Sequence record: MT028491.1
Direction: 5' to 3' (one strand)
DNA: 64,000 nt
The translations under genes and the position numbers were made by a program. Every line of letters begins with the position of its first letter. Within the stretch, counting starts at the first letter, position 1. The notes beneath the pieces were generated by a model that did not search any database, was not told the origin of the DNA, and saw only the letters and a list, made by a program, of their open reading frames with translations. Positions 24,420 through 30,099 of this stretch are shown here, piece by piece.

Positions 24420-24509
24420 TGGTGGAAATGGATGGATTCGAACCACATGCCCATAGGGATCGGATTTACAGTCCAACGCTGGACCTATCCAGCCTTACTT
24501 GCCATTTCC
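24420..24509 (-). tRNA. tRNA-Tyr(GTA) with non-canonical D-arm
   Basis: TTGGA-CT-GTA-AA-TCCGA arm, long variable arm, GGAAATG/CATTTCC, ACCA. Confidence 0.85.
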
Positions 24510-24746: not shown

Positions 24747-24822
24747 TGGTGGGTAATCTTGGTTCTGACCCAAGTTCTTCGGTGCTTCAAACCGACGCAT
24801 TGACCACAGTTGCTTATTACCC
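24747..24822 (-). tRNA. tRNA-Phe(GAA) with atypical T-loop
   Basis: TCGGT-TT-GAA-GC-ACCGA arm; T-loop GTCAGAA; GGGTAAT/ATTACCC, ACCA. Confidence 0.85.
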
Positions 24823-26197: not shown

Positions 26198-26452
26198 TTA
26201 GAAAGAAGGAACTTTCGAATCCCTCTTTCGGTTTTTCATGTATCGCATGGCATGACGATTTGCATACGCCTTACCACGTCGATTGTCAACAACTTCCAAA
26301 CGACCATCAAAACCAACTTGGCAAAGAATAGGAACATCGCCATAGGTTTTCTGAAACGCTTTCTTGTTACGCTTCGGCTTTACAGACTTGTAAAGCTGTT
26401 GAACGATAATCACAGGGACATCACGATAGATGACCAAATTGTTATTCTTCAT
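26198..26452 (-). CDS. basic hypothetical protein
   Basis: start MKNNNLV after GAAGG RBS. Confidence 0.55.
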   Translation of the reverse strand: MKNNNLVIYRDVPVIIVQQLYKSVKPKRNKKAFQKTYGDVPILCQVGFDGRLEVVDNRRGKAYANRHAMRYMKNRKRDSKVPSF

Positions 26453-26649
26453 AACCACTACCTTCACAAGAATCGCATTTAGGTGAACCATTATGATCAT
26501 AATGGCCAGAACCATTACAAGCAATGCAAACCTTTCGTTGCACTTGACTTGCCTTTGGTACAATTTTAAATCGCTTACTAGCCATTCTCTTAAACCTTAA
26601 TGTGTTTCATTAAGACGTTTATATACTAATCATAATCGTATGTCAAACA

Positions 26650-26904
26650 CTAAATTATCTCAAAATGTGATTTAGGAACCAATTGTGTTTCTACTCGACA
26701 TTCCTTGCTCTTGATGCTTTGTGGCTTGGTTGTAGAATAATAATCACCGGCCAATAAATATATGATTTTATCGCATGGAATAGTGTAATGATCAGAATCA
26801 TAATCTATGTCTAGAACTAGTTCAAACACATCACCTATTTTAAAAATGTTGCGTTTACAATCTTTGATAGCTCTGATTTTCATTTTAATACCCATGTCAA
26901 ACAC
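26650..26904 (-). CDS. hypothetical protein
   Basis: 84-aa ORF; true start probably MGIKMK or MKIRA. Confidence 0.5.
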   Translation of the reverse strand: MFDMGIKMKIRAIKDCKRNIFKIGDVFELVLDIDYDSDHYTIPCDKIIYLLAGDYYSTTKPQSIKSKECRVETQLVPKSHFEII

Positions 26905-26945
26905 TAAATTTCAATTGGATCGGGCATTTTTTATCCTTTTAATTA

Positions 26946-27023
26946 TGGTGGCGATAGATAGATTTGAACTACCAACCTTTGCCGTATGAAAGCACTGCTC
27001 TAGACCAATTGAGCTATATCGCC
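26946..27023 (-). tRNA. tRNA-Met or Ile2 (CAT), elongator type
   Basis: GGCGATA/TATCGCC, TT-CAT-AC loop, ACCA. Confidence 0.85.
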
Positions 27024-27033
27024 GTTATTCAAA

Positions 27034-27112
27034 TGGTAGACCATGTGTGATTCGAACACACGTAAGACAGAGTTTAAGAGACTCCCGCTACAACCAACTT
27101 AGCTAATGGTCT
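27034..27112 (-). tRNA. tRNA-Lys(CTT)
   Basis: GGAGT-CT-CTT-AA-ACTCT arm, ACCA. Confidence 0.9.
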
Positions 27113-27119
27113 ATATAAA

Positions 27120-27216
27120 TGGTCGGTAGGGATGGATTTGCACCACAAACCTATAAAGGATCAAAGGCACAGGTCTAGACTACCCTTTGACGCGACTCAC
27201 ACTTCGCCGCCTACCG
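27120..27216 (-). tRNA. 97-nt tRNA-like RNA with extended anticodon arm, anticodon undetermined
   Basis: CGGTAGG/CCTACCG-ACCA acceptor, GCGA/TCGC D-stem, TCAAAGG/CCTTTGA stem enclosing 16 nt, T-loop TGCAAAT. Confidence 0.75.
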
Positions 27217-27222
27217 TTAAAA

Positions 27223-27298
27223 TGGTGGAATGTATCGGTTCCGCCCCGATTTCTGCGCATTGCAAGTGCGCCGTGTTACCTATTTTCACTAACACCCC
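27223..27298 (-). tRNA. tRNA-Ala(TGC) with atypical T-loop
   Basis: G3:U70, GCGCA-CT-TGC-AA-TGCGC; T-loop GGCGGAA. Confidence 0.88.
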
Positions 27299-27304
27299 GT
27301 TATA

Positions 27305-27381
27305 TGGAACTTCCAACTGGATTCAAACCAGTAACCTACAGATTCGTAATCTGTTGCTCTATTCTGTTGAGCTATGGAAGT
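27305..27381 (-). tRNA. tRNA-Arg(ACG)
   Basis: ACAGA-TT-ACG-AA-TCTGT arm; TCCA end. Confidence 0.9.
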
Positions 27382-28196
27382 ATGAATTGGTGCTAAAACC
27401 ATTTTATGAATTGAAACCATATCATAAAATAATCATTATTGTCAAGTCAAATCATAAATATAGCTACAAACTAATTTCAAAAGGTAGCTATAATGAAAGA
27501 CATACTATATCAACTATTTAAAGATAATGGTCGCATATCAAAAACTGATATTAGCAATCACCCGGATTTACCATCATATAACACCCTCATGAGACGTGGT
27601 TTTTCTCTTATAGAATTAAACCAAGAATTCAGCGAGCGTCAATATAATGACAATCCTGTATTGTGTTTACAATGTTCAACAGCCATCACTTTAAAGGCTC
27701 ATGAACAAGGTAATAAATTTTGCTGTAAATCGTGTTCCGCCACACACAATAATCTTAAACGTGGTAAGAAAACAAAAGAAACTTATTTTAAAATCAAACC
27801 ACCAAGAGAATGCTTACATTGTAAGAGTATTGTAACTTCCACTAATAAAAGAACAGTGTTTTGTTCAACATCATGTTCAATAGACTACCAATATCAACAA
27901 AACGTTGCTGATTGGCTTTCTGGTAAGAAACCCGGATGTAATGGTAAAACACTTTCTCTAGCACGTTATGTAAGAAGATACTTACATGAAACTAGAGGAA
28001 CAGCATGTGAATGTTGCGGTTGGGATCAAAGACATCCAGTAGATGGAAGAGTATTGACCGAAATAGATCACATAGACGGCAATGCCGCCAATAATGATCC
28101 AACCAACCTAAAGGTTCTTTGTCCAAACTGTCATTCTATGACTCCAACTCATAGAGCGAGAAATAGAAATTCAGCAAGACAAAGATGAATTGGTGC
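27382..28196 (+). mobile_element. HNH homing-endonuclease cassette flanked by 12-bp direct repeats
   Basis: ATGAATTGGTGC at 27382-27393 and 28185-28196 (overlaps tRNA-Thr 3' end); late promoter CATAAATA 27453-27460. Confidence 0.65.
27493..28188 (+). CDS. HNH homing endonuclease with zinc-finger repeats
   Basis: FCCKSCS, FCSTSC, CECCG, EIDHIDGNAANNDPTNLKVLCPNCHS. Confidence 0.88.
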   Translation: MKDILYQLFKDNGRISKTDISNHPDLPSYNTLMRRGFSLIELNQEFSERQYNDNPVLCLQCSTAITLKAHEQGNKFCCKSCSATHNNLKRGKKTKETYFKIKPPRECLHCKSIVTSTNKRTVFCSTSCSIDYQYQQNVADWLSGKKPGCNGKTLSLARYVRRYLHETRGTACECCGWDQRHPVDGRVLTEIDHIDGNAANNDPTNLKVLCPNCHSMTPTHRARNRNSARQR

Positions 28197-28264
28197 CGAT
28201 ACGAGGAATCGAACCCCGAAAACCTGATTACAAAACAGACATTATACCATTTAATTATATCGGC
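28191..28264 (-). tRNA. tRNA-Thr(TGT)
   Basis: GCCGATA/TATCGGC, TT-TGT-AA loop, ACCA. Confidence 0.92.
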
Positions 28265-28266
28265 AA

Positions 28267-28437
28267 AAGACAATGATACTGATTGAAAGGAGGACGTATC
28301 ATTGTCTTCGATATCACAAAATTTGAAAGGAGGTTGTGATATCTAAAATAGAATTAGTGAACTTTTAGCTGTCTTCAAAGCAACCTAGTAATCAGAAACG
28401 TGTGCACCATTATCTGAAAACCTGAAAAGTTCACTAA
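28267..28437 (-). ncRNA. candidate sRNA: two hairpins with CCUCCUUUCAA loops plus a third domain
   Basis: 13-bp stem 28267-79/28296-308, 10-bp stem 28310-19/28334-43, 13-bp stem 28354-66/28425-37. Confidence 0.65.
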
Positions 28438-29531: not shown

Positions 29532-29607
29532 TGGCGCATATGACGGGGATCGAACCCGCCTAGACTTGATCGACAGTCAAGCGATTTCACCAGAAATCAA
29601 CATATGC
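29532..29607 (-). tRNA. tRNA-Asp(GTC)
   Basis: CTTGA-CT-GTC-GA-TCAAG arm, G73-CCA. Confidence 0.9.
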
Positions 29608-30016: not shown

Positions 30017-30099
30017 TGGTGTGAGTAGAGGGACTTGAACCCCCAATCCGAAGAACTGCATTCTAAGTGCAGCGCGTTTCCCAATTTCGCCATACTCAC
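30017..30099 (-). tRNA. tRNA-Leu(TAG)
   Basis: CTGCA-CT-TAG-AA-TGCAG arm, long variable arm, ACCA. Confidence 0.93.

Follow-up and report, generated by a model that had tools for sequence, protein, structure and literature searches.

The tRNA array of Ochrobactrum phage vB_OspM_OC, a T4-like jumbo phage of 227,654 bp (accession no. MT028491.1), contains a 97-nt element with the outline of a tRNA gene and an anticodon arm that appears too long for one, which raises the question of whether it is a decoding tRNA of unusual build, an RNA kept for another purpose, or the remains of a tRNA gene. The window analysed here is a stretch of 64,000 nt of this record, in which a window position equals the record position minus 124,000. 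The element lies at the following position.

27120-27216, minus strand: the whole candidate, a tRNA-Tyr-derived, tRNA-shaped gene of 97 nt (151120-151216 in the record)

The candidate carries no annotation in the GenBank record MT028491. The sequence-only reading that had singled it out named no strand; all the features described there fall on the minus strand of this interval. A long minus-strand tRNA array encloses the candidate, which is placed between tRNA-Ala(UGC) (27223-27298) and tRNA-Lys(CUU) (27034-27112) at distances of 6 and 7 nt, and the adjoining tRNA genes likewise encode their CCA. Promoter-like sequences occur further upstream.

27416-27480, minus strand: three overlapping sigma-70-like promoter matches, 10/12 each, directly upstream of tRNA-Arg(ACG)

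These are consensus matches only, and no terminator-like site was found in 26400-28400. From this arrangement, a transcription unit comprising Arg, Ala, the candidate, Lys and Met and likely starting at 27416-27480 is plausible. The neighbouring tRNA-Ala(UGC) gene on the minus strand is itself atypical, with the T-loop GGCGGAA and an Rfam score of only 44.9 bits, and is missed by ARAGORN. An exact-protein look-up with a neighbouring 47-aa gene returned the phage's own record alone.

Every feature listed in the sequence-only reading was present in the sequence and in the fold. The minimum free energy (MFE) structure of the candidate is a cloverleaf of -29.7 kcal/mol with a z-score of only -1.33 against shuffled sequences; as this folding energy is not unusual, the element is established by homology (see below) and not by energy. 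The parts of the cloverleaf outside the anticodon arm are as follows.

27210-27216, minus strand: 5′ strand of the acceptor stem, CGGUAGG, of the C1-G72 type (sequence and fold)
27120-27130, minus strand: the acceptor stem's 3′ strand, CCUACCG, with discriminator A73 and encoded CCA (sequence and fold)
27192-27207, minus strand: D-arm, GCGA-AGUGUGAG-UCGC, with a 4-bp D-stem and an 8-nt loop
27147-27160, minus strand: class II variable arm, U-CCU-UUAU-AGG-UUUG, a 3-bp hairpin near-identical to those of the phage tRNA-Tyr genes L050 and L165
27131-27146, minus strand: T-arm, in which the T-loop UGCAAAU has G55 in place of U55 and the stem a U49-C65 mismatch

The acceptor stem is intact, as had been claimed, with all seven pairs formed between CGGUAGG and CCUACCG and with A73 followed by the encoded CCA, and the same acceptor is found in canonical phage tRNA-Tyr genes (L187, L208, and L207). 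In its D-stem and the adjoining flanks the candidate matches exactly the signature of a clade of phage tRNA-Tyr genes described below, and the D-loop is 2 nt shorter than in that clade, the usual residue 18 being missing. The T-stem consists of four pairs and one U-C mismatch, and the T-loop UGCAAAU is common to the candidate and the canonical tRNA-Tyr genes L042, L050, and L067. Measured against the canonical elongator tRNA family (RF00005), the candidate has the acceptor, the D-arm, the T-arm, the discriminator and the CCA, and lacks the 5-bp anticodon stem, the 7-nt loop and the combination of U33 with purine 37. RF00005 gave no match over the candidate, neither at the gathering score nor at E values up to 10, and ARAGORN, applied to 27000-27400 in default, intron (-i and -i0,40), lowered-threshold and tmRNA modes, called only tRNA-Arg and tRNA-Lys.

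The departure from a canonical tRNA is concentrated in the anticodon arm, which contains the following features.

27161-27190, minus strand: replaced anticodon arm of 30 nt, against an expected 17 (sequence, fold, and alignment to the covariance model R1 described below)
27173-27180, minus strand: palindrome GUCUAGAC at the loop apex, containing the triplets UAG, UCU and CUA
27168-27172, minus strand: CUGUG, at the place of C32-U33-G34-U35-A36 of the ancestral loop, counted back from the variable arm

In agreement with the sequence-only reading, the stem UCAAAGG/CCUUUGA is 7 bp long (27184-27190 with 27161-27167), and the loop that it encloses, GUAGUCUAGACCUGUG (27168-27183), is exactly 16 nt. 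In folding calculations the 7-bp register beat the ancestral 5-bp register by 7.3 kcal/mol, and three further inner pairs that would leave the 7-nt loop UCUAGAC gained only about 1 kcal/mol; as modelled, the arm is most robustly described as a 7-bp stem that closes a 16-nt loop. The palindrome pointed out earlier is present in one copy in the window, where about 0.3 copies are expected by chance, so that it is not significant alone. The isolated arm was predicted to favour an extended homodimer by -13.2 kcal/mol; this is a prediction common to any hairpin with a palindromic apex and is no evidence for dimers in vivo. CUGUG is probably a remnant of CUGUA, judging from its register. Alignment with tRNA-Tyr genes (alignment A2, see below) would place the surplus of 13 nt just 5′ of the former C32, counted from the variable arm, and suggests that AAA at positions 36-38 became GCC, the new CC pairing with an inserted GG. 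The loop does contain a GUA triplet, 13 nt out of register; the triplet in register is GUG. Searched as a 26-mer with up to 3 mismatches allowed, the arm occurred only once in the window, and its 18-mer core was absent from IMG/VR, which argues that the arm is not a repeated mobile hairpin.

The origin of the scaffold was traced through its D- and T-arms. Scanning IMG/VR with the T-arm of the candidate returned canonical phage tRNA-Tyr(GUA) genes, in particular L050, L042, and L067, whose D-arm, variable arm and T-arm are close to those of the candidate. A scan with the D-arm signature, GGCGAAGU..GAGUCGCG, identified it as the mark of a large clade of phage tRNA-Tyr genes, whose members all measure 85-88 nt and contain the loop CUGUAAA; some of them have C1-G72 and A73 as in the candidate. 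A blastn search against INPHARED led, via a short T-arm match, to the tRNA-Tyr gene of Ruegeria phage RpAliso, a member of the same clade. Thirty-five tRNA-Tyr genes of the clade were aligned (A2), and the covariance model R1 built from this alignment matched the candidate over all 86 model positions with 54.7 bits (E 5.6e-12), placing 16 nt at three model loop positions and a 2-nt gap in the D-loop, with no other large irregularity. The scaffold without its anticodon arm scored 26-43 against phage tRNA-Tyr genes, a set partly biased because many of its genes were fetched by patterns derived from the candidate, and at most 20-22 against 37 tRNA-Leu and 40 tRNA-Ser genes taken from the same contigs. 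The Leu-like character ascribed to the element in the sequence-only reading is contradicted by these scores (26-43 for Tyr, at most 20 for Leu) and by the Tyr-clade D-arm. Membership in tRNA-Leu was rejected on the same comparison with the 37 Leu genes and on the UAG register, which has C33 and sits on an over-long arm.

Members of the clade (L050, L042, L165, L085, L187, L208, and RpAliso) share with the candidate the acceptor type CGGUAG../..CUACCG-A-CCA, the D-stem and its flanks, the variable hairpin, the T-loop UGCAAAU, the CCA and the place in a tRNA array, whereas their anticodon arm has a 5-bp stem and the loop CUGUAAA in place of a 7-bp stem, a 16-nt loop and a GUA out of register. 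Among the marks of a class II tRNA-Tyr, the candidate has the homology, the long variable arm and A73; it does not have GUA at positions 34-36, where G34 and U35 are identity elements for tyrosyl-tRNA synthetase (TyrRS). We consider it very likely that the candidate derives from a tRNA-Tyr gene, that its anticodon arm has been replaced and that it is unable to decode normally. A separate observation in alignment A2 is that a T-loop with G55 (UGCAAAU or UGCGAAU) accompanies A18 and not G18 (L042, L050, L067, L077, and L178 versus the rest), so that the D-loops ..UAGAGAG and ..UGGAGAG of phage tRNA-Tyr genes show an apparent covariation of the 18-55 tertiary pair.

The window also holds another tRNA-Tyr gene and two further tRNA genes that had escaped annotation.

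24420-24509, minus strand: unannotated paralogue, tRNA-Tyr(GUA), 52.1 bits with R1 (sequence and fold)
24750-24822, minus strand: unannotated tRNA-Phe(GAA) with the odd T-loop GUCAGAA (Rfam match)
29532-29607, minus strand: unannotated tRNA-Asp(GUC) whose D-arm consists of a 6-bp stem and a 4-nt loop, with G73 (Rfam match at 29535-29607)

Neither ARAGORN nor Rfam nor the published annotation registers the tRNA-Tyr(GUA) gene at 24420-24509. Its anticodon arm is canonical (UUGGA-CUGUAAA-UCCGA), a variable arm, a T-arm and A73-CCA are present, and its front half is unusual in having a 9-nt linker and a 6-bp D-stem (GCUGGA/UCCAGC) closing the 4-nt loop UAGG. As the U49-C65 mismatch in the T-stem occurs both in this gene and in the candidate, the two are probably paralogues, and as this gene is present, tyrosine decoding is independent of the candidate. 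The phage's own paper lists the Tyr, Phe and Asp tRNAs as missing (PMC7139368). Their presence in non-canonical form means that the published tRNA set is incomplete, and the tRNAs of the phage may cover all 20 amino acids.

No close relative of the phage was found in INPHARED or IMG/VR. With the candidate as query, blastn against INPHARED returned the phage itself and short T-arm matches only, and a search of IMG/VR for relatives by the pattern of the flanks returned nothing. Metagenome and genome contigs searched with an acceptor/T-arm pattern yielded canonical C1-G72 tRNA-Tyr genes and chance matches and no homologue with a long arm; in IMG/VR, a pattern of the Tyr D-arm, an over-long spacer and the T-loop gave chance matches only. 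Near-identical phages are, however, present in public metagenome runs, and contigs from these runs delimit an exchangeable segment.

27124-27293, minus strand: swappable 170-nt segment with the candidate and most of tRNA-Ala(UGC), bounded by the joint 27123/27294 in runs X1, X2, and X8

In X1, X2, and X8, short contigs match 27085-27123 and 27294-27394 with 0-1 differences and carry 67 other letters in place of 27124-27293. Joined to the GGGGU start and ACCA end that are retained, these 67 letters would make one 76-nt tRNA-sized gene. As these runs are without the element despite matching flanks, the candidate is dispensable for close relatives. A contig from run X4 matches 27151-27303 exactly and then diverges, which indicates that the segment with the candidate and tRNA-Ala exists in another genomic context too. 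On the evidence of these junctions, the candidate belongs to a short segment that is exchanged at tRNA boundaries. The sequence-only reading had named, as a result that would refute its inference, an RNA absent or rapidly degraded and degenerate in related phages (a pseudogene); the absence of the element from near-identical relatives in three metagenome runs provides part of that refutation. The atypical tRNA-Ala(UGC) moves with the candidate in the exchanged segment. Elsewhere in the region, a 254-nt stretch (26640-26893) holding an 84-aa ORF (26650-26904) is missing in run X1, and a relative has another tRNA at the site of the HNH endonuclease gene (27493-28188) of vB_OspM_OC.

Enlarged tRNA genes were also looked for in other viral loci, and the relevant genes are listed below.

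L052 (IMGVR_UViG_3300045594_000206), 1380-1481: Tyr-type gene with 22 nt inserted in the anticodon arm
L052, 1300-1365: tRNA-like gene directly upstream of 1380-1481, in which 3 bp and a 4-nt loop are all that is left of the anticodon arm
L085, 5548-5710: tRNA-Tyr(GUA) with 82 nt in the variable arm, on a contig of 233 kb with a further, normal Tyr gene
L083, 2977-3075: tRNA with 24 nt in the D-loop

The larger gene of contig L052 resembles the candidate in its Tyr-type scaffold, its acceptor and the arm that is enlarged, and its last 32 nt are identical to those of the candidate at 31 positions, including the trailer UUUAUA. Its long arm, in contrast, shares no sequence with that of the candidate and ends in a closed GGG-CGAG-CCC hairpin, and its D-arm is different. 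L052 represents a different type of phage, with a terminase that shares about 51% identity with its counterparts in Klebsiella and E. coli phages, and blastn with the L052 pair matched only the last 32 nt of the candidate. Among the 300 matches listed for the other viral loci (100 loci with 464 tRNA-like matches), two large insertions were seen, those of L085 and L083, both in other arms; insertions are thus rare in phage tRNA genes and not bound to one arm. The L052 pair lies just upstream of a small terminase subunit gene, and a TnpB fragment and a weak RAGATH-18-like match occur upstream of the pair at 43-447. In Acinetobacter phage AB1I1M-1 (L003), an unannotated class II tRNA-Ser(GCU)-like gene at 1457-1547, with the T-loop UGCAAGU and a degenerate D-arm, is located at the end of that phage's tRNA array and is missed by ARAGORN.

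Could an RNA with this arm still serve translation? Natural decoding tRNAs have 5-bp anticodon stems and exceptionally 6 bp, in tRNAs for Sec and Pyl and in mitochondrial tRNA-Ser(UCN) (PMC7609411), so that the 7-bp stem bears out the earlier statement that the arm is too long for ordinary decoding. The lengthened-stem tRNAs are like the candidate in having a stem of more than 5 bp, a reduced D-loop and an atypical T-loop, but they decode with 6 bp and a normal 7-nt loop (PMC7609411), whereas the candidate has 7 bp and 16 nt. Membership among Sec, Pyl or allo-tRNAs was rejected on the same features and on the 7/5 architecture, as against 8/5, 9/4, 8/4 or 9/3 or a 6-bp stem (PMC7609411), and because no UCA or CUA anticodon stands in a 7-nt loop. 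In fact, no register of the candidate joins a closed 7-nt loop, U33 and purine 37: UCUAGAC has C33, AGUCUAG has G33, and GUCUAGA (CUA) is without closing pairs. An unconventional decoder that reads through UAG (Leu), UCU (Arg), CUA (as an amber suppressor) or GUG, possibly as a frameshift tRNA, is highly improbable. It would fit the 7-nt apical loop UCUAGAC in the MFE fold and the failure of ARAGORN to find a tRNA-Arg(UCU) in the window, which leaves the phage otherwise without that anticodon; LeuRS, moreover, does not read the anticodon. These points are outweighed by the faults of the three registers, by the small stabilisation (about 1 kcal/mol) from the inner pairs closing the apical loop, and by an arm that, with about 11 pairs and an internal loop, would be roughly double what the distance between the decoding and peptidyl-transferase centres can accommodate. 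A tRNA-Leu(UAG) gene is, in addition, already present at 30017-30099, and the scaffold is of the Tyr and not the Leu type. The suggestion of a frameshifting or ribosome-rescue tRNA found no support, as the tmRNA mode of ARAGORN was negative and there is no G3-U70 pair. A tmRNA was rejected on the same search, on the G-C pair at 3-70 and on the lack of an Rfam match, and a Y-RNA or YrlA was rejected since the ends of such RNAs lie in a long stem and do not form an acceptor stem with CCA, and there was again no Rfam match.

A precursor that loses the extra 13 nt and so becomes a working tRNA, either through an endonuclease or through host anticodon-nuclease cuts that the phage Pnkp and Rnl1 would then join, is very unlikely. 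The surplus is exactly 13 nt, so that its excision could restore a 7-nt loop, CUGUG stands in the ancestral anticodon register, and RNA ligase 1 and polynucleotide kinases are among the proteins of the phage. Against this, the removable insert envisaged in the sequence-only reading has no bulge-helix-bulge and falls far short of a group I intron, whose core exceeds 200 nt, so an intron-containing tRNA was rejected, and the intron mode of ARAGORN was negative. When the eight possible 13-nt excisions were enumerated by hand, none gave U33 together with purine 37 and a normal loop; the best of them, CUGUGCC, would be a His reading in a Tyr body with C37, and the phage already has a tRNA-His and a tRNA-Tyr. 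Splicing of this kind is not known from bacteria or phages.

Two readings accept that the candidate does not decode, and they differ in whether it is kept for something else. The analysis agrees with the sequence-only reading on a tRNA-shaped gene whose arm is too long for ordinary decoding, and the decoy role proposed there is a tentative possibility: the candidate may be a retained tRNA-Tyr mimic that acts during infection as a decoy or sponge for a factor recognising tRNA-Tyr. Conceivable factors are a defence nuclease of the host directed at tRNAs and an enzyme that modifies or charges tRNA, and the enlarged loop, with three GU steps and a UGU motif, could keep the RNA off the ribosome or offer bait sites. 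This would agree with the alteration of the anticodon arm alone, the other stems and the conserved letters being intact, with the stable, perfect 7-bp helix of the new arm, with the unchanged recurrence of the segment in X4, with the analogous pair of anticodon-less tRNA-like genes in L052, and with the remodelled D-arms of the phage's working Tyr and Asp tRNAs. The phage encodes Rnl1, two polynucleotide kinases and a phosphatase, a T4-like set for tRNA repair, which suggests that it meets anticodon-loop nucleases. tRNA-Tyr is the target of a retron effector that phage tRNA-Tyr genes counter, but rescue in that study needed a decoding-competent tRNA-Tyr, and anticodon or stem mutants failed (PMC11555353). 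A decoy is further opposed by the lack of a conserved family with this arm in the searches described above, by the near-identical relatives that do without the element, and by the D-loop deletion, which may weaken the tRNA elbow. The fuller version, in which the candidate is kept as an anticodon-less tRNA-Tyr decoy or sponge against a host factor, possibly dimerising via its palindrome, the real tRNA-Tyr escapes by its remodelled D-arm, and L052 is a second independent example, is more doubtful still. The repair set lies outside the window at 81-86 kb of MT028491.1 (L309), where RNA ligase 1 (p108), polynucleotide kinases (p107 and p110) and a metallophosphatase (p105) are encoded together with a macro-domain protein (p102) and a receiver-like protein (p109). 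The phage further encodes p093, a small protein annotated as a putative ArfA-like ribosome rescue factor.

The reading that we prefer, with moderate confidence, is that the candidate is a recently disabled and dispensable tRNA-Tyr paralogue, a young pseudogene that would still be co-transcribed and processed. It is supported by the full-length match to R1, in which the sole large insertion falls in the anticodon loop of a Tyr-like scaffold, and by an anticodon stem beyond those of known decoders in a gene that ARAGORN and Rfam fail to call. The separate tRNA-Tyr(GUA) in the genome and the relatives with identical flanks and no element point in the same direction, as do the absence of a conserved family in IMG/VR, the metagenome and genome contigs and INPHARED, and the loss of 2 nt from the D-loop, including the usual residue 18. 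The D-loop and variable-arm insertions in other phage tRNA genes fit sporadic insertion events. As in a pseudogene, the element is tRNA-derived with an essential part destroyed, and it is not conserved in relatives, as far as the short contigs of X1, X2, and X8 reach; neutral decay across the whole gene, in contrast, was not seen. Apart from the 2 nt of the D-loop and the U49-C65 mismatch, which is shared with the paralogue, decay is limited to one arm: the candidate keeps 7/7 pairs in the acceptor, 4/4 in the D-stem, 3/3 in the variable stem and 4/5 in the T-stem, as well as the CCA and the conserved letters of the D- and T-arms. As decay is not spread over the gene, a pseudogene is compatible only with very recent inactivation. 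The two extra G-C pairs, which need changes on both strands, look more like a selected hairpin or one inserted as a unit than like random damage, an identical copy exists in a different genomic context (X4), and the unrelated phage contig L052 offers by analogy a Tyr-type gene expanded in the same arm. Phages also usually purge useless DNA. Among known elements, the tRNA-Other of Bacillus cereus, a pseudo-tRNA, is comparable in its origin from a tRNA gene and its place outside translation, and such elements can be recruited for other roles (PMC3399842). The tRNA-Other adjoins a genomic island and acts inside a longer regulatory RNA (PMC3399842), whereas the candidate, which has its own CCA and is altered in one arm only, sits at exact spacing among the genes of a phage tRNA operon.

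As a disabled paralogue, the candidate would have arisen when the tyrosine tRNA gene of the phage was duplicated and its 17-nt anticodon stem-loop was replaced by a 30-nt hairpin. It would be transcribed with tRNA-Arg, Ala, Lys and Met, and RNase P and 3′ trimming enzymes would release a tRNA-shaped RNA of about 97 nt. No anticodon of this RNA could be positioned in the decoding centre of the ribosome, and TyrRS would charge the RNA poorly because G34 and U35 are displaced, tyrosine codons presumably being read by the second Tyr gene at 24420-24509.

The junctions in the relatives indicate that the tRNA array of this phage evolves by the swap of short segments bounded by tRNAs. If the candidate is a relic, its lesson is mostly one for annotation. 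If it is functional, it would be a natural tRNA-shaped RNA that is recognised as tRNA-Tyr without decoding. It would open a direct way to study the response of phages to defences that target tRNAs, and it would represent a new type of anti-defence RNA.
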